Shown one piece after another: positions 1-54,088 of a stretch of 64,000 nucleotides of DNA. Made by a program: the position numbers and the translations under genes. Position 1 is the first letter of the stretch. Each line of letters starts with the position of its first letter. The notes beneath the pieces are model-generated. The model was not told the origin of the DNA. It saw only the letters and a program-made list of their open reading frames with translations, and did not search any database. This DNA is from Blastocladiella emersonii ATCC 22665 (Eukaryota > Fungi > Blastocladiomycota), in contig JANHCV010000001.1 of assembly GCA_025594325.1 (NCBI GenBank), positions 3,782,001 through 3,846,000 of the forward strand, read 5' to 3'.

Positions 1-1
1 A

Positions 2-874
2 CCCGACGAGCTCCTTGTCAACGTGATGCAGCACCTTTCGGCCGAGGCGCTCGCCGAGCTCGGGCAGTGCAACCGGCGGCTGCACCGGCTCAGTGAGAGC
101 GAGGAGGTGTGGCGGCACTTGTTGGAACGCGACTTTGGTTCGCGGATCGGCAAGGCGTTCCCGATGACGCCGCTTGACTTTCGGCGTTCAACCAAGTCGG
201 GTGGCCGGCTCGGCAAGGCCTCGGCACCGCGGCGCAAGTGGCAGTACCGCGTTCTCGCTGAGACGGCGGCGCTATGCGGGCCGTGCGACTGCCCTCCGCC
301 AGCGCCGCTCCCGACAGGCTGGCGCCGGTGGCTCTTGCTCACGTCCGGCAACCACCCCAACTGCTGCTACACGCGGTTCGCGCGGCTGCGGTCGCGGTGG
401 CTTGGGCGGCACCGCGCCAAGTGGTCCGAGGCGAGCGACCCGCCGCGCGTGCTGCTGGCGCGCCTGGCGCTGCACGCGCGGGCGAACCTGTACCATCTGC
501 CGCTGACGCCGGTCAAGCTGCTCGGGCTCGCCATCAGTCCGCTGTGCGTCGGTCTACTGCACGTGCGGCTGTCGCACATGGTCGTGCACGGTGTGTTCGG
601 GTCGATCGCGCGCGACCTGCACCAGACAACGCTCAGCATCCTTCGCGACGCGCCGGTCGAGGACGGACACTGGCTCGCGGTGACGGGCCCGCTCGCGGTC
701 GCGGCGCTGTGCCTGCGCGACGTGGACTGGGCGCTGTCCAGGATCGTGCGGTCGCCGCACCTCGCCATGGTGTGCCGCGTCGTCCTCGCGGTCGCGGCGC
801 TGGGGTCCGCGGGTGTGTCGCTGTTCGTCCTGTGGCAGATCTATTGCCGCGGCGCGTCGCCGTACGCGTTCTGA
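2..874 (+). CDS. F-box domain protein with hydrophobic C-terminal segments (5' end lies before the window)
   Basis: Frame is open from nt 2: PDELLVNVMQHLSAEALAELGQCNRRLHRLSESEEVWRHLLERDF fits the F-box consensus (LP.ELL..I...L....L..V.RR...L...E..W). The C-terminus has 2-3 hydrophobic stretches. Confidence 0.75.
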   Translation, partial: PDELLVNVMQHLSAEALAELGQCNRRLHRLSESEEVWRHLLERDFGSRIGKAFPMTPLDFRRSTKSGGRLGKASAPRRKWQYRVLAETAALCGPCDCPPPAPLPTGWRRWLLLTSGNHPNCCYTRFARLRSRWLGRHRAKWSEASDPPRVLLARLALHARANLYHLPLTPVKLLGLAISPLCVGLLHVRLSHMVVHGVFGSIARDLHQTTLSILRDAPVEDGHWLAVTGPLAVAALCLRDVDWALSRIVRSPHLAMVCRVVLAVAALGSAGVSLFVLWQIYCRGASPYAF

Positions 875-1616
875 GCACCCGAGGAGCAATGTATTCGTGA
901 TTTAGTGTCTGATTGGGATCTGATTGCCCGCGTTTCATTCATGCAGCCCGCACGTGATGGTCTTGCAACGGCAAACGTCTCCCTCTCGTCGAGCAGGCCG
1001 CAGCAGCCTTCCCTCGGCGTTCTGGAAGTCGGTGCATTAATCGCCCACGCATTTCACGAATCAGTCGCCGCAACGTCGCGGCCCATCGCGCACACACTCG
1101 AGGTCGGCGCCATCCAACGCGAGCGAGCGAGTGCTTGAGCTTGAGAGTGTGGCTGAGCCGCTGCGGCGTCCCTGCGTTGCCAACGGCCAAGCCACGGATG
1201 TAGGTAGGGCTCGGGAACGGCAGCAGCGGGGGGTGGGCGCGGGAGGGCTCGCTGTGCGCATCCGCGGGAGGAGGCGGCGGGGGGCGGGCTGGGCTTGACG
1301 CTTGCGCCCTCGGAACACCACTTCCGCCCGCCTCCGACCTAGGTCCGCTCACCGCGGACTTGACGTTCGCGCTGGGCCCGACCGGCGACACATAAATACC
1401 GGCAGGTCCCCCGCACACCCTCGCAAGCTCCCGCAACGGAGCGTGCGCGCTCTCTGTTCGCCCGCGTCCCCTCCTCCTCACGATGATCACTTCACGCATC
1501 AATTCGCTGGCGCGGGAGCGAACATGTATCGCACCCGTCGCCCGCCGCACCGCAACAACGAATTAATAACAAGACTAGACTTACTTGTATTCAAACCTTG
1601 ACGTTAAAGGAGAAAA

Positions 1617-3545
1617 CTAGTGCAGGGGGGAGCTCGATCCCCAACCTACATTCAGGTCGAGGCCAGGCCCGCCTGCTGGGTTGTAGCGCGGCACCTTGGG
1701 GTCGGACCCGGCGGTGAGTGCGCTCGGAGAAGCGATGGAAGCCCACGTCCGCTTCTCGCCAAACGCGAGTTGCTGGAACTGCGACGGGTCAGTCATCGCC
1801 GAAGCGTTCCACATGACGCCCAAAGGCGGCATCGGAGAGGAGTTTGAGCCACCGAGCGGAGTGGAGCTCGAAACGACGGGTCGAGGAGCGGCGGCCATCG
1901 CGGCCATCGCGGCCATCGCGTGGTGAAGCGGGTTGGCGGCCGCGGGACTCGATGCGACAGGTTGAGGAGCGGCGGCCATCGCAGCCATCGAGCCTGACAC
2001 GTGGTGAAGCGGGACTGGAGCCAGCGCGGCCATCGCGGCCGACGCGTAAGAAAGCGGGGCGGCGGCCGCGGGACTCGATGCGACGATAGGTCGGGGAGCG
2101 GCGGCCATCGCACCGGACGCGCGAGGAAGCAGGGCGGCGGCCAGCGCGGTCATCGAGCCGGACGCGTGAGGAAGCGGGGCGGGGGCCGCGGGACTCGAAG
2201 CGACAACAGGTCGAGGAGCGGCGGCCATCGAGCCGGACGCGTGAGGAAGCTGGACGGTGGCCGCGGGAATCGGCGCGGCGGGTCGAGGAGCGGCGGCCAT
2301 CGCGTGAGGAAGCGAGACCGCGGCCGCGGGACTCGGCGCGACGGGTTGAGGAGCGTCAGAAGACGAGGAACCGGTAATGAGAGCAGGCGACTCGCGCGCA
2401 ATGGGAGCGTTCGAGCACAGGCACGAGAGAGCCTCCTTGATGTCGCTCTTCTTCGCGTCCAGGTTGATGGGTTTGGCGAAAAGCTCCTTGTCGCCCACGA
2501 TGAGCCGCGTACGGTCAGCAATGGTGAGGGCAGAAACGGCACCAACGGCCATGCTGTCGCCAGAGAAAATGTGCTCCACAAACTGCACGATCGTAACGTG
2601 AAGCGACGCGGCATGGCGCACCACGGCCAGAAGCTCGCCAAGAACCGAACGTTGCGACTCTTTGCAGCACGACATGGCGCGGCTACCGAACACGTTCAGA
2701 TCAACGTTGGGGTTCAAGAGGGCGAACAAGAGAGCCACGCGAAGAGCATGGGACTTCAAGTTGGACACGTTGGTAAAAAGGCGACTTTTCTCGTCTGGTC
2801 TCAAGTTGTGTCAGTAAATTCATGATCGAACCGAGGAGCTCCATTTAAGAAGGAAACGTACTCATCGCGGGGTTCTTGACAAGGGCCGCCTTCAAGACGT
2901 GGCCGTGAAGCGTCTTGCACAGCTCGCCCGACAAAGCGCCGAGAGCGACGTACAAGTACTCGAGGAGGTCCGCAAGCGAGATGCTCTCCAAGAGAGGGTG
3001 GGCAGCTGCACCGGAGCGCGACGCGGGGGGCTCGGGAGGGCTGCCATTCCGAACGGCATGGAAGAGATTGTACAGAGCGTCTTTCGCGGCCTGGAACAGC
3101 AGCGGGTACTTGAGCTCATCCACAGCATTCAGGAGGCCCGAGTAGTCGTATTCAAATTTACCCGTAGTTGAGTTAAAAGTGGCAAGAAAGTGCGAGTACT
3201 CGTTTGAAGTTTTGAAGGAGTCGCTCTGAATCGTCAAGGCGAGCTTCGTTGAGTTCCGGGCGTGGCTCTGGACGCGAAGCGGGTGTAGGAACGGGAGTGG
3301 TGAGAGTTGTGCTTCACACCCAACGACGAGGCGACACGTACGGCATTCTTCTGTTTCTTCTCGGTTTTGCTGTAGGGGGTGTCGCGCGGACCCCTCCTGT
3401 CCGTGACGGCGTTGTTGACGACATTCCGTTGCGTGCCCTTGGCGCGTTGAGATGAAGGACCCGACGACGAAGTTGAGTCGTCGTGCGCGGCGCCAAGGCC
3501 CACGCCGGCGCCCAACTCGGCGCCCGAAGCAAAGTTGGAGGACAT
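1617..3545 (-). CDS. Orphan ~595-aa protein (3 exons: 3545-3342, 3267-2862, 2794-1617) with C-terminal MAAAPRP-type repeats
   Basis: Three ORF-track pieces join in frame through canonical introns (gtacgt...ccag 3341-3268; gtacgt...ctgac...ccag 2861-2795). Total 1788 nt. No recognisable family. Confidence 0.6.
1880..2335 (-). repeat. Degenerate coding tandem repeat (~60-75 nt units) encoding MAAAPRPxxASSPAAxxPLPHASG
   Basis: Recurrent gcggcggccatcg / ggccgcgggactcga blocks on the + strand, about 7 units. Confidence 0.85.
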
Positions 3546-3717
3546 GTCGTTGGATAAAAGGTTTGAGATAAAGTCGTGCTACGAGTTACAAGGCCGTATG
3601 AAGGCAAGTTGCATCAGGTTACATGCGCGGGGGGAGAAGCAGCCGAAGGGCCGAAGGGAGCCGCAGAAAGCAGAAAGGGGTGGCGGTCGGTCAGTTCATA
3701 ACGCGTGCGGTGCCACT

Positions 3718-3760
3718 CACGTGCTACTCGCATCCGCTCACGTGCTACTCGCATCCGCTC
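3718..3760. repeat. 21-bp tandem duplication (cacgtgctactcgcatccgct x2) in the intergenic spacer
   Basis: Seen directly. Confidence 0.9.
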
Positions 3761-3838
3761 CTGCGAGACACTCTGCGAGACACCTCGCTTCTGCGAGGTG
3801 AGACACTCGGAGAGACATGAATACTATTGAATTAATAA

Positions 3839-6800
3839 CTAGATTGACTTCTTCACCTCGTGGTGGTTCAGAGTCGCGACCGCGTAGCGCAGCATACCCG
3901 AGTACAACGGGTACGACCAGAACGGCGCGAGGCGCTTGAGACGCGCAATCGAGGCATTTTTGATCTCGTGGAGGACCGAGATGGCGCCGTGCATGTCCTG
4001 GAACGACTTGATGTTGAACGACGGCGCGCACGCCGAGTGGTTCGGCATGTGGAACGCGTCAACGGCGAAAATCGTGTCCTTGAACGCCGCCGGGTTACGG
4101 TTCAAGCAGTACTCGAGCGCGTTGCACGCGTTGTCATAAATGACGTACTGGGGCATTTTCTCGAAGCGAGTAAGCAGCGTTTGGTACACGACGCGCGGGG
4201 ACTCCTTGTTTGAGAGCACCTGGAACCCGATACACTTGCGGCAGCACAAGCACGAAAACAGAACGACGCCAGGCGCAAGTTTCCGAGCGCCGCGCGTATG
4301 CTTGGTGCATGAGACCGCGTCGTCGTCCTCGTCCGGCGGCTTCGACGAGTTGGGCTTCATGTACTCGACGAGCTGGCGGACGACCTCGCGGTACGGGAAG
4401 TAGCGACCATTGTCGCGAAGGTCACGGCGAGGCTCGGTCTTGATTCGCTCGCGGGTGGCATGGTCAGCGAGCGGAAGGTCGCCAAGCGGCGCGCCCGAAC
4501 TCGAGTCGAAGAAGATGGAGCGCGCGCGGTTGAGAATATGGGCCACGACGCGTTGCACAAGCTGCATGCCTGGAAGTTGGGCGAGAGCAAAGCCATTTAG
4601 TCGCTCTGCACGAGAAGCAGCGTGAAGCTCGGCTTTGCGTTGCGCGGCCCGGTACTCGATAGCAGCAAGCTTCGTTTTGAGGTCCTCGGACGCACCATAA
4701 AACGCAAACTCGTAGCTGTCGTGAATCGGTCTCGAAGCTGGATTTGGATCCAAGCAAACGAGCTCGTTCAAGTCACGGTGCAATGTCCCCTCGTGCTGAA
4801 CGAAGTCGGACAGGGTGTGCACGCCCTTGAACTTCAAGAAGTTGAAGACGTAAGGGTACTTGTTGAGCAGTTCTCCAAGTCGGTTCCAGAACTCGTTGAA
4901 AGCGTTAATACTCGCTGTACTGCGCTCGCTTTCGACCACCGCCTCCGCTTCCTGTTGAGCAGCAAGGAGATGCCGAACGGCCGCGTCAAAGGCATCGAGG
5001 TGAGCAGCAGCTGAGACGGAGCTGGGCAACAGGGGACCCGAGTGCGGGACGCGAGCGACTTCGTCGACGAGCGCGGCGATCGTTGGTGCGTACCGACGCA
5101 GCGCCTGGTGATGATGAAAGTCGAGCGACTGGCCTACGTTGAGCGAGGCGAAGGCGTGCGCGGCGTCCCATGCTGCACACGGAATGAGATGAGAGCACGA
5201 GTTGATTTGCTTACCAAGAGTAAGCGCGAACTCGGTCAGCGCGTTCGGGGCCGACGGCGCGAGTACCACGCGATGAGCATCGGACGGGTCAATAGCGAGG
5301 AAGCGCGAGACGAGGTGGATGCTCGGGTCCTCGGCCGCAGCCGCCTTGAGAGGATCCGCAACGACAGGCTTCTTGTGAGCGAGATCGACAAGGGCGGCGG
5401 TGATGGTGGCGACGTTGAACTGCGAGAGGAGCGGGGTGCGAAGAGCGCGCCGGTAGGGGTTCGCCCTTGTCGAGACCTCCGTAATGAGGTAGCTGGGCGA
5501 AGAAAAGTCGGGCAGCCTGCGCGTCTCCGTCGAGAACTCGATACCGTCGAGGCAGATGCCCGTGACGGACGGGCACTCGCAAAAGTTGTTCACAGGAAGC
5601 TTGAGCAGGTGCAAGAAGCCGGCGAGGGCGGCTGAGATGTAGCTGCGCAAGCGCACGAGTTGCTCGAGTTTGCGGTCCGCTAGCGTGTCGTCCGCAATGA
5701 GCTCCTCCACAAGCGGTCGAGCATACGAGTCGGTCCACCACGCGTGCGTCGGGTAGGCATGCAGCGTCGCCGCGGCGAGCTCGTAGAGCAGGGTCGCGTC
5801 CACAAGCACATAATTTGAAACGTTGATGAGCCCGTCGTCGCGGCCGTCATAACAGATGCGAGTACTGCATGCGTTGCATCGAGCGTCGTAGACGGTGAGG
5901 CCGTGGTACATGTCCGAGCGCAAGAAGAGGTGCGCGCGCGTCGCGACCTTGACGAGCTCCGCGCGGCCGTGACATTTTGGACAGACGACCACACGCGCGC
6001 GCGAGGAGTCACTCGCACGTGGGGACGCCGCCGTCGCTGCCGCCGAGTCGTCGACGCCGTGCTGCTGCTGCTGCTGCTGCTGCTGCTGCGTCGCCGCACC
6101 GGCCATGGATGTAGCCAGCGATCCCTCGGGGTAGATGCAAAGCGTCGGGAAGAGGTCACGGACACGCCGTTCCCGCATGAGCCGCGAGCGCAGCTTCAGG
6201 TCGTCGCGGCGAAGGAGCGGATACATGCGCAGCGAGTGCACGACCCGTTGGCCGAGCGTCGTCTTCTCGCACGTGTGGCCGTCTTCGTCGGCCTGCTTGT
6301 CGGCCTCCGCCTCTGCCTCTGCCTCTGCCTCCGCCTCTGCCTCTGCCTCTGCCTCCGCCTCTGCCTCCGCCTCTGCGGCGGCGGCGGCTGCAGCTGCGTC
6401 GGGGGACAGCTGCTCGTCGACCTCGTCGACCTCGTCGCCGTCCGCTGCTGCGCCAGCCTCGAGCGCGCTGGCCAAGTGCAGCAGGTCCACCGCGCGACGA
6501 ATGTGTGCCGCGTGCATGCAGCCCGACTTGCGCTTCTTCGTGTACTTCTCGCTGTGCGACTTGGGCCCGCACGTGAAGCACAGCGGGGGCTGCTGCGACT
6601 TGCCGCCCTCGCGACCGCGAAGCATGAAGACCTGCGGCGGTTCGTCGGAGGTGAAGGAGACGAAGATGCTCGCGTTGAGTTCAGGGTCGAGCCGAGTCGA
6701 CGGGAACTGGATGGTGGTGCAAATCGCGACAGGTCGAGAGGGCGACGCGGTGAGCAGGTTGCCGAGTTCGCCGCGGTTACCCGCAAAGAGGTTTGGAAGA

Positions 6801-7802
6801 GTCGCGAGAGTGACCTGAGTGCCGCCGAGCACGAGGTCGTTGAGGAACGACACGACGACGTGGCGCGAGTGGTCGCACGGCGCAAGTGATGGAATAGGAT
6901 CGGCGGGCGGAGCGGCACTTGAGCTCCGATCCCACAGCGCGTCTGTAAAGTTGGAGGGCGTGCTGCAGAGAGTACACGCCGAGTGGACCATCGGCTGGCC
7001 CGCGTAGTGGATGAGGTGCATCGTGACGACCGCGACCCGCCGTTTCGGGTGGGTGATAAAGTTACCCTCCTTGTTGCGCTCCATGTGGGGCACGAGGAAC
7101 ACCTTGATGCGCGAGCGCTGCGTGTCGCCATAGATCTGCTGGATCGGAATCCAGACGTTGCAGTTGGCTCGAACTACAGAGATGAAGGTCGAGACGATGA
7201 ACATGGGCGGTGGGGACGGATCAAGCGCGAGACGTACGGTCGCGAAGCTCAGCAGGAAAGTTCGCAGGGGCGACTTGAGGGACAGGACACTCCACTGCCA
7301 TAGGACTATGAACCGGAGAAATGCTTGGTGGATCATGTTGGTGCGGGCAAGAGCCGGGTTGTTCAACTGCGTCGTCATGCGGGAGCGGCCCAGCGGATCC
7401 CTGCTCGCGATGGTCAGGTTGACGCGCTGCTGCATCCCGACCTGCGGTGCGGTGTGGTTGAGCTGTTGTGACTTGGGGTGCAGGCGTAGATGAAGTTGCA
7501 CGTGCGGCCCGAACGGCGTTGACCTCGGCAAGAACGTCATCGCTCAGGTCCAGCGCCGCGATGTTGTATCCGTGATCAAGGCGGAATACAGCGCGTTCGA
7601 TCAGCGACTGACGCTCCTTGGCGGCCCTTTCCGCACGCAGCTCGACAGCAGACTTCATCCTTGTCCAAGTTGGTTGAGCCTAAATGTAGTGTACGGGCGT
7701 GAGCAGGAGCTCGAGCTCGCGTCGCTTCAGCGGCGGGACTCTCACCTCAGGGCCTGAGCTCTGACCACGGCCGCGGCCGCGACCTCGGCCTCCCGGAGCC
7801 AT
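3839..7802 (-). CDS. KDZ-family transposase, ~1277 aa (exons 7802-7746, 7679-7238, 7173-3839)
   Basis: SWIM-like CFTC...CMH; CxC-type cluster CPKCH...CNAC...YDGRDDGLIN; catalytic-type ICLDG, YDNAC, VDAFHMPNHSAC and HEIKN motifs; SCTKH/CLCC. Introns gtgag...ttag (7745-7680) and gtacgt...tgtag (7237-7174) join the frames exactly (3834 nt). Confidence 0.85.
6061..6395. repeat. Coding microsatellites in the transposase: (CTG)n = poly-Q at ~6061-6088 and hexamer repeat = poly-(AE) at ~6303-6375
   Basis: Seen directly. Confidence 0.9.
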
Positions 7803-8657
7803 GATGATCAAGCTGAAAATGACGTTGCAGCAGGTTGAGGCGATGACCCTGTGGCAATGAGCGCTTCGACGTGATGATGTCTCGCCGCGCTTCGCTCACA
7901 GCACGCGTTCCGATATCACCTGAGACGCGTGACCACTGTCTCATGTCTCACGTTTCGCTTCTCGCGTCGCGCGCCTCAAGTCGACGACCCTCAACCGCGT
8001 TCCACGACAAGAACATCTGGCGCCTCGCCTCGAAGGAGGGCCGAACGAGTAATCGGATGAGATCCACACGAGGGAACACCTCATCCTCTCGCCCAAGTCC
8101 TTTGCGCTAAGTCGACTCTGACCCTTCCTTGCTCACAAGTCAAAGTAGAAGGAAAAACGTGAGTCCACACGAGCCATGACAACACTCCAACGGTGAGCCC
8201 GAGCGCGTGAATGCGCGGCCTGCATCAGCGCGGCACCAGCCCTGCGGCCTGCCTGTCAGCGCCTGCAGGCGTAATGAAGACGGTCAGGTGGCCGCCCTGA
8301 GCCACACCCCTAGGCTGCACACACGCATCCCTCCCTGGGATGCAGTCAGAGAGTCTCAACCGGGCTGCACGGCCTTTTCCCCTCCGCCTTGGAGCTGAGC
8401 AAGCGTCCCTTCTCTCCTTCGCACCTCCACATCCAACGCGCTCGCTGGTCCCCGGCTCCCAAAGGCTTCGCGCCGCGCTCCTCCTGCATCTCTCCGTCCC
8501 CTCCCCTTCCCTTCCCCTTCGTAACGCCGCTGGTTGGCCGCCCTCCTCTCCCCCTTTCACTCCACCCACCCGCAAGATCCCACCCGTTACAATGTACGCG
8601 CGCACCATCGCCCTGCTGCACGGGCCACCTCTGACCCACCCCGTGCCCGCGCGTAGC

Positions 8658-11600
8658 ATGTCGTCCGTCACGCTGGCCGTCGACGGCATGACGTGCCAGT
8701 CGTGCGTGCGCGGCGTCACCTTCGCCGCGACCTCGGTCCCTGGCGTCACGGGCGCCGACGTGTCGCTCGAGCTCAAGTCGGCGACGCTGCACCTCGCGCC
8801 CGACGCCGCGTGCATGGCGACCGTCGACGCGGCCGCCGCCGCCATCTACGACGCCGGGTTCGATGTCGTCGTCCCGCCCTCGGCCGCCGCGTCGCTGCCC
8901 GCCACGCTCGCGCCCGTGACCGCTGCGCACGACGCGGCGCTCGTGCCCATCTTCATGTCCTCGTCGTCGCCGACGCTTGCGCCCACGCCGCCGCCACTGG
9001 CCTCGGTCGCGTCCCTCGCTCCCGCTTCCCCCAACGCGCTCCACAAGTGCGCCATCTCGGTGCAGGGCATGACGTGCACCGCGTGCGTGGCCGCCATCGA
9101 GGGCGTCGTCGGCGCGCTGCCGGGCGTCCACGCCATCTCCGTGTCGCTGCTCGCCGAGCGCGCCAACATCGACTACGACGCGGCCCTGACGTCCGCCGAG
9201 ACCCTCGCCGAGGCCATCTACGACGCCGGGTTCGACTCGCAGGTCCTATCCGTCGACGCGCCGCTGCCCGTCGCCTCTTCGGCCTCGGCCACTTCGAAAG
9301 CAGCGAGCGCGCAGCCCGTGCTCATCGAGCTCGACGTGTACGGCATGACGTGTACCGTGTGCTCGGGCACCATCGAGCGCGAGGTCGGCAAGATGCCCGG
9401 CGTCACGGCCGTCGACGTGGCCCTGACGACCAAGCGCGCGCGCATCGTGGCCGTCCCCGGCACGGTCGGGATCCGCGACGTGATGCACCGCATCGAGGAG
9501 CTCGGCTTCACCCCGCTCGTCCCCGACCAAAACATGCAGGTCCAGACCGACTCGCTCCAGCGCACCCGCGAGATTGTCGAGTGGCGCAACGCGTTCCGCT
9601 GGTGCCTCGTCTTCGCCGTCCCCAACATGCTCATCGGCATGATCCTGCCCATGCTCTGGCCGCAGCCTGCTGCTGCCGCCGCTCCGGGTATGGGACACGG
9701 CGGCGGCATGGGTATGGCTCCGGGCTCCGACAGCGGCGCGGGGATGAAGATGCACTCGACGTTCCCGCTCGACAACATCTTCGTCGTGCCCGGCCTCTCG
9801 CTCAACCACCTGATCCAGCTCGGCCTCACGGTGCCCGTCCAGTTCGGCGCCGTCGGCCGCAAGTTCTACCGCTCCGCGTACAAGTCGCTGCGGCTCGGGA
9901 CCGCGACCATGGACGTGCTCGTCGCGCTCGGCACCACGGCGGCTTTCGTCGCGTCGATCGGGTCCCTCATCCACTCCATGGTCGTCAGCACCCACCCGCA
10001 CGCCACCACCTTCTTCGACACGTGCACCATGCTGCTCTTCTTCATCTCGCTCGGCAAGTACCTCGAGAACTCGGCCAAGGGCAAGACGTCCTCGGCCCTC
10101 ACCAAGCTGCTCTCCCTGAAACCCGCTTCGGCCACGCTGCTCACCGTCGACCCGACCGACGCGTCGGTCGTCCTGCGCGAGGAGCAGGTCGCCGCCGAGC
10201 TGATCCAGGTCGGCGATATCCTGCGCGTGCTCCCCGGCGAGCGCGTCCCCGCCGACGGCGAGGTCGTGTTCGGGACCACGGCCGTCGACGAGTCGCTCGT
10301 CACGGGCGAGGCGGTGCCCGTCGCCAAGAAGGTAGGGTCGCAGCTGATCGCCGGTACCGTCAACGGGGCCGGCGCCGTGCACCTGCGCGCGTCGCACGTC
10401 GGCAGCGATACCGCCCTGTCGCGCATCGTGTCGCTCGTCGAGCAGGCGCAGGCGTCCAAGGCGCCGATCCAGCGGTGGGCCGACCTGATCGCGTCGTACT
10501 TTGTGCCCGTGGTCGTCTCGCTCGCCGTCCTCACGCTCATCCTGTGGCTCTCGGTCACCCGCGCGACCGGCCACTTCCCGTACCGCGCCGTCGCCGAGGA
10601 CGAGTCCGACGACGTGTTCCTGTGCCTGCAGATCTGCATCTCGGTCATCGTCGTCGCGTGCCCGTGCACGCTCGGGCTGTCGGTGCCGACCGCCGTCATG
10701 GTCGGGACCGGCGTCGGCGCGCAGCTCGGGATCCTGATCAAGGGCGGCGAGCCGCTCGAGCGCGTGCACAAGCTCGACCACGTCGTCTTCGACAAGACCG
10801 GCACGCTGACCGAGGGCAAGATGACCGTCATGGCGTCCGAGATCTACGTGCCCGCGCCGCCCGCCGATGCGGGAAAGCGCGCCGCGCGCGAGTTCCACCT
10901 GTCCGAGTCCGACTTCTGGGCCATTGTCGGCGCCGCCGAGGCCAACTCGGAGCACCCGCTCGCGCGCGCCATGACCGCGCACGCATCGGCGTTCCTCGGC
11001 GGCGACATGCGCGCGTCGCACGCCGCCGTGCACGTCACCGACTTCGAGGTGCGCCCCGGGCTGGGGATCCGGTGCACGGCCGCGCTCCAGGACGGCCGCG
11101 CCGTCGACGTGGCCATCGGCTCCATGGCGTTCCTCGACCACCTCGGGATCCCGACGTCCGCGCGCGCCGCGGCTGCCCGCGGGATCGCCGCGCCCGTCGC
11201 CGGCGGCGTCGACGTGCACCACCGCGAGCAGACGCACGCGCAGCGCGGACACACGGTCGTCTTTGTCGCGGTCGCGGGGAACGTCGCCGGGCTCATCGCC
11301 ATGGGCGACAACCTCAAGCCGCACGCGGCGCGCGTCGTGCGCGCGCTCCAGGAGGATATGGGCGTCGAGGTGTCCATGGTCACGGGCGATAACCCGACGA
11401 CCGCGCTCGTCCTCGCGCGCCAGGCCGGGATCCCACCGCACCGCGTTTTCGCGGGTGTCTCGCCCGCGGGCAAGGCCGACATCATCCGCGCGCTCCAGGC
11501 CAACGACCCCGAGGCGCTCGCGCAGTTCGTGCCCGCAGCAAGTGCGTCGCCGATGCTCGAGCCCTCGTCCGACTCGCTCCCGCCGACCCCCACGATGCGC

Positions 11601-29498: not shown

Positions 29499-30669
29499 CT
29501 ATTCGAAGAGCGACGCGAGCGAGATGCTCCCGCCGTCAGCGCTGCGCGTCGAACGCACAGGCGTGACCTTGAACGACTCGTAGAGCGCCGGTGCCTTGTC
29601 GCCCGACGACGACGCGTCCGCGCCGATCCGCTCGCCGTCAGCGTTGCGCTTGAGAAACTTGGCCATACCCGCAGAACCCGCCGCCTCCTTTTCGGCGCGC
29701 TCGGCCGGCCAGTCGTCGACCACGACGTCGTTCTTGAGCAGGTTCTCGGTTGTCGACCAGCTGAAGCGGATGACGCCCGGCCAGCCAAACACGGGATCGA
29801 GGGTGCGCTTGAGCCACGCGACCGTGTTCGGGTCTACATGTCGCAAGTGTTCGCGTTAGAAGCGAGGCTGGATCGCGCTGCCGTGGGGGAACGAACGCAC
29901 CAGACGGATAACCCGATCCCCAGGTCGTGTCGATCTCCTCGGTGAGAGCGGACTCGACAAACTCCCAGCGCGAGAGGACGTGGTCGCGGACGACCTTGGC
30001 CACGATACTCGCGGCACTGACCGTCGCGTACAGCGAGTCGGCCTTCTTGGCGACGGTGAAGCCAATCTTCGGGAAGCGCGCCTTGAGCTTGCGCTGGTAC
30101 GAGTCTGGCGGGCCGACCGTGTCGACGTAGACGTGCTCGAGATTCACGCCGCGGTCGACGAGCGACTGGATCAGCGACATGGTGGTGTCGTGTGCGATCG
30201 CGTTCAGGTTGTACTTGGACCGCTGCAGCATCCACTCGGAGAGGTCCTGCGGCGACAAGGCATTGTACGCGAAGCCGAGCTGCGGTTCGCTCGTGATGGC
30301 CTCCTCGTCCTGCGAGTCCAGCGCGAGGTCGCCGAGCGACGGAAGCGCGGCGCCGTTGCCCATGGCGGCGGAGGCAATCTTGGCAAAGCGCGTCGCGCGC
30401 TGCTCCTCGTTGAGCACCTTGGAGTCGTCGACGGCCATGTCACGCAGGATCTGCTCGCTCGGCTTGGGGAGGTAGCACACGGCGTAGACCATGGGGCCGA
30501 GGACGGGTCCACGACCAGCCTCGTCGACACCGAGAATGCAGGGCTCGGTGCGGCACGCAGCGGGGACCTCGCTGAAGTACTGGACCGACCGGACCATGGG
30601 CAGTGGCGGGAACGTCGCCGCGTGCGCATCCGTCGGGTGCGGTGGCGGATCCATGGGTGTTGATGACAT
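29499..30669 (-). CDS. RNH201: Ribonuclease H2 subunit A
   Basis: CILGVDEAGRGPVLGPMVY, DDSKVL, HVYVDTVG, KKADSLYATVSAASIVAKVVRD, GSGYPS-DPNT, RFSWST; one intron. Confidence 0.96.
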
Positions 30670-30883
30670 TGCAGCAAGTGGTAGAGTGCGGATGGGGCTC
30701 TCGTCGTGATGAACGAGTTGATCAGGTCGCAGCAGCGCGGTCACGCCGCCCAAGCCGACGATTCCGAGAGCGCGTCGCGCCCACCGTGTGCGACCATGAT
30801 TTCTCCCCTCTCCTCCGTCCCTGCCTCTGGACCAACGCCAGAGTGCTCCATGAATCGTTGCTGAAGCCATCGCATAGACAGCC

Positions 30884-32407
30884 ATGACCTCCGTCTTCGC
30901 CGCGCGCGCGCCCGCAGTCGGCGCCTCGGCCAAGGCCGCTGCCGCTGCCGCCGCGAGCGTCCCGATGCTGGTCGGCGCCGACTCGAGCCCCTACGTCCAC
31001 AAGCTGCGCATGTACTTCAAGTACCGCGGCATCGAGATCGAGGAGGTCCAGAACAACCCGGATATCTTCGCCAGCTTGATCCTGCCTCGCACGAACCTCA
31101 CCATGATCCCTGTCGTTGTGGACGGCGATGCCGTCCTTTCGGACACGTACGCGATCTCTCCGTCGAAGGATTACACGCAACATACTAACTTAACGACCTA
31201 TCACGTTCAGGGGTCTCATCATGGACCACTACGAGGGCAAGCTACCCATCGGCAGTCCGCAGTACCCGTCGCTCGTGCCGGCCACGCCCAAACAGCGCTT
31301 CGTCTCGCAGGCGTTCGAGTTCATGTCCGAGGACTGGTTCTTCCTCGTCGGCTTCGCGCAGCGGTTCGGTCACCTCGAGGAGCACGAGCGCTACCTGCTC
31401 AACATGGTGGCCGAGGGGACGGGCCGCTCGACGGGTCTGATCCCAAAGTACGCCAAGTCGCGCGAGCTACTCGACCAGCGCTTCCTTCGCGCGCGCAAGC
31501 CGTGGGGCGTCACCGAGGAGACCATGCCCGTGTTCGACGCGTACCTCGAGCGCTTCCTCGTCCAGCTCTCGGCCCACTTTGACACGCACCGCTACCTGCT
31601 GTCCGACGAGGTGCCGTGCCGCGGCGACTTTGCGCTCGCTGGCCAGCTGTCGGGGTTCATTGCACGGTACGCCATCGCGTTCGTCTCGAGAGAATCGAGT
31701 GAAGCTCGCTCACGCTTTGCGAATCGTGTAATCACACTTGTAGCGATCCCGTCCCGTCGTACGTGCTCAAGACCAAGGCGCCCAACCTGATGCGGTACCT
31801 CGCGCGCATGCAGAACGCGCCCGAGGCCGCCTACGAGTACCCGAACCGCGTCGTGCACCTCGACGGCGTTGCCAACGCGCCCGCCGTGACTGTGACGCGT
31901 GCCGACACCAAAACGTCAGCCGCCCCGACCTTCCTCGCCAACGACGTGATCCCGCCGACCTTGTACCCGGCGCTGTCGGCGCTAGTCGACCTGACTACCC
32001 ACGTCGAGCAGACGCACGCGCTGGCCGTCAAGCACGCGACCACGGCCGCGGCCAAGAGCGGGACCAGCGGCACCGAGTGGGTCGAGCTGCCGCGCGCTGT
32101 CGGGTACCCGCGCTTCACCGTCGGCGGCGAGGAGAAGGGCACGCGCATGGCGCAGGTCTTCTCGCTCTTTGCCTGGGCTCGCATGTGGCGCGGCGGAGTC
32201 GATCCTCACTCGGCCGCCGAGGCTGACGTGGTCCTCGGGATCGCTGCTGCCACGTCAAGCAGCGACACGACCGCAGCCGCCGATCCCGACGCGTTTTTGG
32301 CCAAGGTGCGCGGGCTCGCGTCCAAGCTGGTCCTCGACAAGTCGGTGCGCCGCAACGCCGAGAACCAGATCGAAATCCGTGCGGTCGCGGCCACGGCCAA
32401 GCTGTGA
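30884..32407 (+). CDS. Glutathione S-transferase-like protein (introns ~31147-31210 and ~31667-31744)
   Basis: GADSSPYVHKLRMYFKYRGI, MIPVV...LSDT, YLLSDEVPCRGDFALAGQL, RDPVPS...APNLMRYLARM. Confidence 0.8.
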
Positions 32408-35996: not shown

Positions 35997-37016
35997 GGCG
36001 AGTGTGTGTGTGATGCCGACGATGGCGAGGAGCGGGGGAGGAGCGAGAGGTGCGAGAGGTGCGCGAGGGCGAGGGGGAGTGTGCAATGTGCGAGGGGGTG
36101 CTCGAGGAGCGATCGTGTAGCGAGGCGTCTCTTGTGCTAAGGGGGGCGCGGGGAGGAGCGATCCGCTCAGGCCTTATGAGGTCCGACTCGTTGGCGCGGT
36201 GCGCGGGAAGTGGACCCAAGGTCGGCCGACCGCGAAATGGCGCAGTCGGCCGGAATTGGAGCTTGACTCCACTCGGCGCACCGCCGCCGCTGCTCGCCGA
36301 GCCACGCAGCACCGCTCGCCAAGAGCCGCAGCTGCACCGGCAGTTGCCGCGGTGCGCACGGCCAGTCACCGCTCCCTTGGACCCAGATCTGCCGCCGGCG
36401 GACGTGGTCCAGGGAGGGAAGGTCGGTCAAGGCGGGAAGAAATGGCGCAGTCGCTTCCCTTCTTGGCATCGGGCCTGTGCGTCCGCGCACGCTCTCAGAC
36501 AAGGGATTGCGATGCCGCATGTGCAGCCGCATCGCTCGGCCGCGCGCGCGGAGGCGGCAGAGCTCTGCTGCCTCGCTCCCACGGGCCCATGGCGCAGCGT
36601 CAACGCGCGTCATACTTGCCTCAGACGGTGTCATCCAGTGAGGCATTTGTGGAGCTCCGACGGGTTCCATCAGTGTTCACGAGGGCCGCGAGACGGCGGT
36701 CTGGACCTAGCTGCACGAGCCGGATCATGGCGCCTCGCATGCTTCACGCTCACGTCGCTCCAGCGTCCAGCTCACGGGCTTGGTGTTCGTCGGCGGTATG
36801 TGGCGACGAGACGTGCGAGACCGTGCGAGCGATCCGGAACAGGGCGCGGGCGCCGCGTCGGGGCAGCAGCGGGACGCGCCGACGCGTTGCGCATCCGCAC
36901 GTGGTGCTGTCGGTGCCCGCGCTCGAGGAGTTCTACGCCGTCGCCGAGCAGGGCCACCCGCCCCTCGCCTTTCCGCTCGCCCACCCCGACCACCAATCCC
37001 CTCCCCTCCTCACACG

Positions 37017-38418
37017 ATGCAACGCATGAAAAAACCGCGATCGCGGTCCAACTCGCCGCACCGGCGCAGCGCGCCCTCGCCACCCGCCCCAGCGGCCCCC
37101 GCAGCGGCACAACCCGAGGCCGACCTGGCGTGGCCATGGGTCCTCGCCGCGTCCGTCGCACTCCGCTTCGGAATGCTGGTATACGGCGCGTGGCAGGACG
37201 CGAACCTGGCCGTGCCGTACACGGACATTGACTACCGCGTCTTCACCGGCGCCGCGCGGGCCGTGTCCCGTGGCCGCCCGCCGTACGACCGCGCGACGTA
37301 CCGGTACACGCCGCTGCTCGCGTGGCTGCTGGTGCCGGGCACGGTGCTCGGCCTCGAGGCCGTCTGGGGCAAGCTGCTGTTTGTCGCCGCCGACCTCGTC
37401 ACGGGCGTTCTCGTCCGCGAGCTCGCCGTCACCGCCGTCGCGCGGTGCGGACTGCCGGCGGGGAGTGCGCGACGGCGCGCGACGGGGCTCGTGGCGGCGG
37501 CGTGGCTGCTCAACCCGTTTGTCGCCAACATCTCGACGCGCGGCAGCGCCGAGAGCCTCATGTGCGCGCTGTGCGTCGCGGTCCCGCTGCTCATGGCGCG
37601 CGGACGGTCGTTTACGGCCGCCGCGGTGCTCGGGCTCGCGGTCCACCTCAAGATCTACCCGGGCGTGTACGCCATCCCGATCGCATGGCGGATCCTGTTC
37701 GGTTACGGCGACGCTCCAGCAAGCTGGCCGAAACGGGTCGGCCGGCTGGTAGCGTTCGGCGGCACTGCGCTCGCCGTATTCGCTGGGCTGTCGGCCGCCA
37801 TGTGGGCCGTGTACGGGTGGCCGTTCGTCGAGCACACGTACCTGTACCACGTCACGCGCACCGACCACCGGCACAACTTCAGCGTCTACTTTTACCTCAT
37901 GTACCTCTCGCTCAAGGACGAGGTCGCGACCGCGGCCGCAGCAGCTGTCCCTGCGGCGTCGTGGGTCGCGCTCGCCCCGTTCGCCGCGCAGGCCGGCGTC
38001 ACGGCGCTCCTCGGCGTAGCGACGGCGCGGCTCGACCTGACCGTGGCCATGTTCCTGCAGACGTTTGCGTTCGTGGCGTTCAACAAGGTCATGACGTCGC
38101 AGTATTTCATGTGGTGGCTGTGCTACGTGCCCGTGGTCGCCGTGTACCTCAGCGGGCGCGTCTCGGCGCGCACGGTCGTGGTGCTGGTCGCGGCGTGGGT
38201 CGGCGCGCAGGTACAATCTGACGGACTTACGGCATGTGGGCGGGATCACTCACAATCGTTCGTGTGTGCGATGGTAGGCGGCGTGGCTGCACCAGGCGTA
38301 CTGGCTCGAGTTCCGCGGCATGCCGACGTTCCGCGGGCTCTTTTTCGCGGGCGCGGCGCTGTTTGTCGTGCACATTGCGATCCTGGTCGTCATTCTCCGG
38401 CGCCTGCCGCGGCCGTGA
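37017..38418 (+). CDS. GPI14: GPI mannosyltransferase I (PIG-M/Gpi14), intron 38211-38277
   Basis: YTDIDYRVF, RATYRYTPLLAWLL, NISTRGSAES, VHLKIYP, YHVTRTDHRHNFS, FVAFNKVMTSQYFMWW. Confidence 0.96.
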
Positions 38419-38478
38419 TAAACAAGGAAATGTGTTCACTATTTGGTTAACTCTCACGCTCCTCCGACAAACCGTCAG

Positions 38479-39267: not shown

Positions 39268-39894
39268 GGTTGTCGATGCGTGAGGTTACGATGCGTTGCG
39301 TTGCGTTGCGTAGAGCGTGGAGGAACGCGGACAGTGCGCGGCGGAGCGCTTTATAGCGGCAACGGGTGCATGGCATTCGCGGCGCGTCCAGAAGCTTGAG
39401 GATGGTCGGCGGCGGCCGCGCACGTGGCGCAGCGCGCGGCGCGGCGATCGCTGTCTCGCGCGTTGTCTCGCGGCCAGCGTGCTGCCCGCGGCCCACGGTG
39501 GCCATCGCCGCCGCGCCCGCCTTGGCCAATCGGGCGACATTGCCGGCAACCTGCTCGCGCGCATGAAAGGGCCCACGCGCGCTACAGTAGATCCAGCGAT
39601 GAACAAGGGCGGCCGTCGCGGCGCCGCTGTTGCAGCGACGCCACAGAGCACCGGCTGCCTGGGCGGCCTTTCGACCTGCTGCCCCTTCCCGCACACCCGC
39701 CCTCCACCTCCTCTCTCTCCCCGCACACAACCGCATACGACCGCACTCGCTTCATAAGACAGCGTCGTAAGCGGCGTGAGCCCGCACCGCAGACACCCTA
39801 GACGACCCGGCTTGCCACGCGCGCTCGCGAACACCCTGGTCCCTGGCCGTCCGTCCCTTCATAACCCCCGCCCGCGCTCCCACCACCCCCGCCT

Positions 39895-53393: not shown

Positions 53394-54088
53394 GATTCAT
53401 TCGTTTGCATAGACTCTGGGTTGTGATCAAGGTGAAGGGAGTAGTGAGACGCGCAGGTTGAGGCGCCAAGTCGCGGTCGCTCGAAGCGGGAGCAGCCCAA
53501 GTGCCACATGCGCGCGTGATCAGGACGTGATATCGCGACGCGAACCTGTGAGACACGCCGCGAGACATTCGTTCCTGATCACACCCGCACATCCGCGGGT
53601 CCCTCACTATGACGTGCTTGCATCCGGCAGTCACGCTGGGGCCACCAGACGCTCGCCCGTCGCTGAGCCGAGTGGCCCGGACCCAGAACTTCCGTTCGTT
53701 CGCTCATGGGCAATCCCGAGCTCGCGGACGCCACAAGCATCGACGCATCGTCCGCGCACTAAACGCTTACCGAAATGAACTGCCGGAACGGGCGGAGTCC
53801 CGGCGGCGGTGGCGTAGTGGCGGAAGCCCGGAACTACGAACCATGGCGCGCGGCAAGCCATAGCCGTGCACCATCATCCCGCCTGCTCGTTGGATCATTC
53901 ATTACTACACGCGACGCCCCAACGACGTAAATACCCGTGGCCCGCGCTCAGTTTCGTATCCTTACCCGTGGCACGATCTGCTCTCCTTCTCCTCTCCCTC
54001 ACACATCTACCGGCCTGGTGGCCATCCCTACCATTAACGCCCTCCTCAACTGCCCTGCGGCGCACCCCTCACCAACCAGCGCGTCGCC

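Follow-up and report, generated by a model that had tools for sequence, protein, structure and literature searches.

A candidate orphan gene beside a KDZ-type transposase in Blastocladiella emersonii: most likely neighbours by accident

Introduction

KDZ (Kyakuja-Dileera-Zisupton) transposons reportedly carry passenger genes such as TET/JBP, a feature that Iyer et al. are said to have described in 2014. Here we analyse a spliced candidate gene that lies downstream of a KDZ-type transposase-like open reading frame (ORF), on the same strand, in the fungus Blastocladiella emersonii ATCC 22665. The window, that is, the whole stretch of DNA analysed (64,000 nucleotides, C1:3,782,001-3,846,000), belongs to a genome of 32.65 Mb in 21 contigs; the coordinates of the candidate gene, the spacer upstream of it, the repeats and the KDZ ORF are window positions and refer to the minus strand. 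An original prediction had seen in the two genes a new two-gene KDZ architecture, whose second gene might regulate transposition or chromatin. Our analysis points to an ordinary orphan (taxonomically restricted) coding gene that was missed by annotation and that owes its place beside the KDZ gene to an accident of history, a reading to which we give somewhat better than even chances.

Comparison with the closest described systems sets the frame for this reading. Unlike the KDZ transposons with TET/JBP, the candidate has no Tet_JBP domain, and the transposase-candidate pair is present in a single copy, without terminal inverted repeats (TIRs) or an 8-bp target site duplication (TSD). The likeness to KDZ transposons with passengers (PMC12730594) lies in the arrangement, a KDZ/CxC4-type transposase gene being followed here by an intron-containing second gene on the same strand. 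The same genome holds an 8.4-kb KDZ transposon, to whose transposase that of the window is 43-48% identical in its C-terminus and which has long passenger DNA downstream; however, this element has two copies, TIRs and a TSD, of which the window locus has none, and the passengers of the two are unrelated (tblastx). With the two-gene PIF/Harbinger transposons, in which a transposase is accompanied by a Myb/SANT partner, the common idea is a separately encoded second protein; unlike them, the candidate has no detected Myb/SANT or other DNA-binding domain, and the pair was not found to recur. Fungal orphan genes offer the other comparison: like them, the candidate combines a coding signal and canonical introns with the absence of any homologue or domain found, low-complexity repeats and a lack of annotation, whereas it differs from them in adjoining a transposase and in being flanked by a unique 15-bp repeat, which hints at insertion and not at birth in place.

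Gene Model and Coding Evidence

The candidate gene was modelled with three exons on the minus strand, from an ATG at 3545 to a TAG stop at 1619-1617, and its coding length of 1743 nt (581 codons) is free of stops and frameshifts. The three spliced exons of the original prediction are thus retained, with a product of 581 codons in place of about 595 residues. Its start some 290 bp past the transposase stop, on the same strand, agrees with the measured gap of 293 bp.

Exon 1 (3342..3545, 68 codons) begins with the first start codon in its frame, which, if read on, runs into a stop at 3236-3234, within intron 1. This intron (3226..3341, 116 nt) has the form GTACGT...TTGAC...CAG, with the GTACGT donor at 3341. 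Exon 2 (2862..3225, 364 nt; in-frame reference window:2863-3225:-, 121 aa) lies in a frame of 246 open codons that meets a TAA inside intron 2 and that has no ATG, GTG or TTG upstream of 3237; exon 2 therefore depends on exon 1. Intron 2 (2795..2861, 67 nt) reads GTACGT...TACTGAC...AG, where TACTGAC is branch-like; it is in phase 1, and the codon formed at the junction is AAC. Exon 3 (1620..2794; in-frame reference window:1620-2792:-, 391 aa) then runs up to the TAG stop.

This genome is GC-rich and several frames are open at once over long stretches, so that ORF length alone is no proof of coding here. Codon log-odds were computed with two tables, a host table from the Pfam-validated ORFs of the window (ERCC4/MUS81, Sel1 and SPRY) and a second table from the KDZ ORF. 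In exons 1 and 2 and in the core of exon 3, the model frame was the sole positive one among six with both tables (for exon 2, +0.10 under the host and +0.33 under the KDZ table); for the exon 3 tail this held with the host table only, and no frame was clearly positive in the introns and flanks. When dinucleotide-preserving shuffles were scored with the host table, the model frame exceeded the best of their six frames in 500/500 cases for four of five segments (exons 1, 2, 3N and 3C), and the scores of exon 2 and the exon 3 core stood about 8 standard deviations above the shuffles.

The GC content at the three codon positions follows the pattern GC1>GC2<GC3, and the phase of the third-position signal (GC3) changes precisely at both modelled introns. 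In exon 3, imperfect in-frame tandem repeats (1891..2366, minus strand; families D1 and D2), with units containing LPHA, SGSM and AAAPRP, show spacings of 63, 75, 120 and 126 nt, all multiples of 3, as are the periods of 45, 75 and 120 nt reported by Tandem Repeats Finder (TRF). Taking into consideration (i) the codon log-odds and the shuffle test, (ii) the GC3 phase, (iii) the exon 2 frame that has no start of its own and (iv) the repeat spacings in multiples of 3, we conclude from these sequence features that the candidate is a protein-coding gene now, or was one very recently.

Protein Product and Search for Relatives

The predicted product of exon 1, rich in Ser, Gly and Ala, is positively charged (net +4); the basic stretch KTEKKQK, which the original prediction had placed in the N-terminus, stands at its end. 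Exon 2 and residues 1-137 of exon 3 are rich in Leu and Ala, and single-sequence AlphaFold2 (AF2) models show five helices for exon 2 and mostly helices for the exon 3 core. The helical-looking core proposed earlier is thus predicted here as well, with low confidence in both models (predicted local distance difference test, pLDDT, 56 for exon 2 and 47 for the exon 3 core). The repeat tail is genuine: residues 138-307 of exon 3, approximately (about 170 aa), consist of degenerate repeats with 35% Ala and 17% Pro, and are followed by a tail of 84 aa (residues 308-391) rich in Ser, Pro and Gly. Our guess is that the product is a largely disordered, non-enzymatic protein.

Relatives were sought exon by exon, with exon 1, the repeats and the tail covered by the family scans and the search of the own genome only. 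None of the three exons matched a family in Pfam (E up to 1), PHROGs or NCBIfam, and neither exon 2 nor the exon 3 core matched a PDB sequence (E up to 5). The ESM Atlas returned nothing usable, its top scores of 0.82-0.85 being at chance level. A word-indexed search of 5.8 billion proteins gave no relative for exon 3 residues 1-137 or for exon 2, the latter queried as part of its 245-aa open frame so as to admit longer relatives. When exon 3 residues 1-137 were run with HMMER against all 1.84 billion representatives, 0 matches were obtained, and hence no self-match either, and an Rfam scan of window positions 1-9000 found nothing. The term orphan used in the original prediction therefore describes the candidate well in Pfam, NCBIfam, PHROGs, PDB, the ESM Atlas and the protein-library searches, and its exclusion of TET/JBP stands too, no exon having a Tet_JBP match in Pfam at E up to 1. 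Nor was a Myb/SANT or other DNA-binding domain found in the candidate with Pfam, NCBIfam or PHROGs. A Crypton-like tyrosine recombinase was also considered, on the strength of an HALR stretch in exon 3 reminiscent of box II; it was rejected, as the region has no Tyr and Pfam gives no integrase.

The paper on the B. emersonii genome (PMC9730499) reports 10,031 genes, predicted with funannotate. Judged from the protein-library searches, the candidate gene is apparently missing from this public gene set. The public protein of the neighbouring transposase gene, H9P43_001428, is present in the searched protein collection, and the proteome of this genome is therefore represented there; since the exon 3 core scan gave not even a self-match, the public set evidently has no model that contains this exon in this frame.

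Relation of the Candidate to the Transposase Gene

At both the DNA and the protein level the candidate is single copy in its own genome, the transposase-candidate pair occurs once, and nothing candidate-like lies beside the two paralogous KDZ loci of the genome. The check for homologues next to KDZ genes that had been proposed with the original prediction yielded no homologue to place, as far as the own genome is concerned. No significant inverted repeat joins 7541-9200 to 901-3838 (best E 0.29), no combination of an 8-bp direct repeat and TIRs was found around the KDZ gene, with or without the candidate, and the termini of the 8.4-kb KDZ family are absent from the window. With the pair unique and neither TIR nor TSD found, neither copies nor ends give evidence of a single mobile unit comprising both genes. 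The proposed two-gene KDZ architecture is not borne out by a pair that occurs once, without an enclosing TIR or TSD, in a genome where the passenger of the 8.4-kb element is unrelated; likewise, the supposed regulatory partner in transposition or chromatin found no positive support, neither recurrence nor a domain having been found.

The candidate lies between two copies of a direct repeat. Copy 1, TCTAGTTATTAATTC (3829..3843, minus strand; family D11), overlaps the KDZ stop codon, and copy 2, TCTTGTTATTAATTC (1560..1574, minus strand), lies 42 nt beyond the stop of the candidate. The two agree in 14 of 15 positions, so that the unit can be written TCT[A/T]GTTATTAATTC, and, if one gap is allowed, the similarity may reach about 20/23. 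Elsewhere in the 32.65-Mb genome the 11-bp core of the repeat is absent. Two occurrences of an 11-mer genome-wide are at chance level, a control having likewise given two; two matches 2.27 kb apart, on the same strand and with matching flanks, were obtained in 0/100 shuffles. The spacing and the matching flanks of the copies are beyond chance. Between the copies lies a block of 2254 bp (3828..1575), which comprises exactly the promoter-like spacer, the gene itself and 42 nt of flank on the 3' side; its outline suggests a one-off insertion at the transposase stop codon. The 15-bp repeat is much longer than the 8-bp TSD of KDZ elements. Adjacency to the solitary KDZ gene is most likely accidental; a discrete block flanked by a unique 15-bp direct repeat fits a single insertion or capture better than a conserved transposon module.

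Two other accounts of the block were rejected. A Helitron or retrocopy origin does not fit, as the block has no poly(A), lacks both an A|T insertion context and a strong 3' hairpin, and keeps its introns. That the transposase ORF had formerly continued beyond repeat copy 2 was dismissed as well, only 26 unremarkable codons being found there in frame.

The 293-bp spacer upstream of the candidate has features of its own. Two TGTCTC-N6-TGTCTC dimers, that is, four TGTCTC (3765..3817, minus strand), lie 220-270 bp upstream of the ATG; between them is a hairpin with a perfect 8-bp stem (3781-3800, minus strand). A perfect 21-bp tandem duplication (3713..3754, minus strand; family D8; TRF period 21, 100% match) carries a CACGTG palindrome in each copy. 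The dimer occurs at 113 sites in the genome, against 4 for a reversed control, with a consensus near TGTCTCGCACCGTGTCTC. All 23 inspected sites (20 sampled and three in the window, at 3765-3817, 39452-39469 and 53550-53567) are intergenic, and many of them lie some hundreds of bp 5' of a gene. The dimer is a host-wide intergenic motif, and is probably promoter-associated, a host cis-regulatory element with a 12-bp period. An independent, host-style transcription of the candidate is therefore favoured. Clusters of TGTCTC/GAGACA had also been considered as transposon ends, and were rejected because the dimer is host-wide and intergenic.

Composition separates the candidate from the host less clearly than had been supposed. 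The original prediction had described it as AT-richer, like the transposase, and this holds for the values themselves: GC3 is 0.72-0.76 in the candidate and 0.78 in the KDZ ORF, against 0.83-0.96 in most host ORFs. What does not hold is the power of this measure to discriminate, since two host housekeeping genes of the window, those for RNase HII (GC3 0.75) and the PIG-M mannosyltransferase (GC3 0.79), at 29641-30990 and 36711-38447, are equally low. Low GC3 is an unreliable mark of foreign DNA in the B. emersonii genome.

Weighing the Explanations

If the candidate is an ordinary orphan gene, its product would start with a short, disordered and mildly basic N-terminus, followed by about 250 aa that are rich in Leu and Ala and probably helical, by about 170 aa of tandem repeats rich in Ala and Pro, and by the tail rich in Ser, Pro and Gly. 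The gene would be transcribed on its own from the 293-bp spacer with its host-type TGTCTC dimers and CACGTG duplication, the 2254-bp block holding the gene and its upstream region would have been inserted or captured once at the transposase stop codon, and the product would have no role in transposition.

Several points weigh against this reading. The candidate is apparently absent from the public gene set, and the lack of relatives rests on exon-by-exon queries. The block lacks a poly(A) tail and a convincing TIR; an inverted GTATTCA of 7 bp close to its ends is all that resembles one. In the helical core, codon and amino-acid usage fits the KDZ table (+0.32) better than the host table (+0.10), and this preference is smaller or nil in the two host genes of low GC3; the KDZ-like usage of the core lends weak support to an origin shared with the KDZ gene, possibly a foreign one.

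The same usage of the core, closer to the KDZ table than to the host table, is what one would expect if the candidate were a passenger (cargo) of a KDZ transposon with ends that are decayed or too short to be seen, having arrived with the transposase and playing no part in transposition. Such an arrival would also suit its position directly downstream of the transposase, on the same strand and 293 bp from the stop, the about 5 kb of passenger DNA that the 8.4-kb KDZ element bears downstream of its own transposase, and the state of both genes, which are intact and unique, as expected for a recent single arrival. However, the pair has no TIR or 8-bp TSD around it, the termini of the 8.4-kb family are not in the window, and the candidate has a 15-bp flanking repeat of its own that begins inside the transposase stop codon and so points to a separate event; the host-type motif upstream and a GC3 inside the host range argue in the same direction. 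We regard cargo as unlikely, if less so than the other alternatives. Somewhat less probable again is that the sequence has no function, either as a remnant in decay or as an open frame that is not transcribed, given that long ORFs come easily in DNA rich in GC. The model frame is the sole positive one in each exon and, for four of the five segments, outscores the best of six frames of 500/500 shuffles, the GC1>GC2<GC3 pattern shifts phase at canonical introns, all repeat-unit lengths are multiples of 3 and 581 codons are free of stops and frameshifts, all of which a non-functional sequence would have to accommodate; in its favour are the absence, to go by the library searches, from the public set of funannotate genes, the relatives that were not found, the low AF2 confidence (pLDDT 56 and 47) and the three frames that are all open over exon 1, as is usual in a GC-rich genome.

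Two further explanations give the candidate a closer tie to the transposase. It is improbable, in our judgement, that it is a lineage-specific accessory or passenger gene of an undescribed KDZ lineage of early-diverging fungi, captured at the 3' end of the transposase by an insertion that duplicated 15 bp; if true, the locus would be a snapshot of how DNA transposons gain second genes. A shade more improbable still is a functional accessory protein of this KDZ lineage, a regulator that binds DNA or chromatin like the Myb-like second protein of PIF/Harbinger. The tandem arrangement of transposase and candidate, the basic N-terminal stretch, the KDZ-like codon usage of the core and the second or third proteins of other DNA transposon superfamilies (PMC12730594) speak for such a protein; but the candidate has one copy, no homologue being found beside the two other KDZ genes of the genome or in 1.84 billion representatives, neither a DNA-binding nor another domain was detected in it, and the transposase itself lacks definable mobile-element ends.

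For an ordinary orphan gene, the reading that we prefer, little is gained in practice beyond a gene of 581 codons that the annotation of ATCC 22665 apparently lacks. The locus also carries a caution, in that lying beside a transposase is no evidence of a transposon module. If the block flanked by the 15-bp repeat proves to hold a gene that was captured, it would provide an example of how passengers are acquired at such loci. Of the by-products, the missing gene model and the TGTCTC dimer motif found across the genome are of most use.

The Neighbouring Transposase Gene and the 8.4-kb KDZ Transposon

The KDZ-type transposase-like ORF (3839..7540, minus strand; 1233 codons, stop TAG at 3841-3839) is context and lies outside the candidate gene. 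It matches Pfam CxC4 with 28.5 bits (E 1.5e-6), above the cutoff of 26.9, and Pfam KDZ with 14.8 bits, under the cutoff of 26.6. In the C-terminus it shares 43-48% identity with the transposase of the TIR-bounded KDZ element of the genome (two paralogues), and on these similarities the ORF that adjoins the candidate is assigned to the KDZ-type transposases. The gene is single copy at the DNA level, with no fragments elsewhere in the genome. The public model H9P43_001428 is 892 aa long, has the same stop as the 1233-codon ORF and splices out stretches through which the ORF stays open, with gaps around 4562-4975 and upstream of 7204. Because the two differ in the parts spliced out, the gene model of the transposase is uncertain.

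The 8.4-kb KDZ transposon is present in two copies that are 96.5% identical, on C1 at about 4.92 Mb (L011 1253-9663) and on C21 at about 0.97 Mb (L012 1493-9769). Its TIRs are about 50-90 bp long, and its TSD is 7-8 bp (GGATCGCC and GTGAGCGG), which agrees with the 8-bp TSD that Zisupton and Dileera make (PMC12730594). This element is the only demonstrable KDZ transposon of the genome. The passenger DNA that follows its transposase, about 5 kb long, has a lower GC content and includes Gln/His-rich open frames; tblastx found no similarity between this passenger region and the candidate gene. A 23-aa tblastx match between the two was rejected, being out of frame with exon 3, and an AT-rich motif past the stop codon, considered as a feature common with the paralogous KDZ element, was discarded because it is not there. 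One of the two copies of the element has a deletion of about 24 bp beside its left end.

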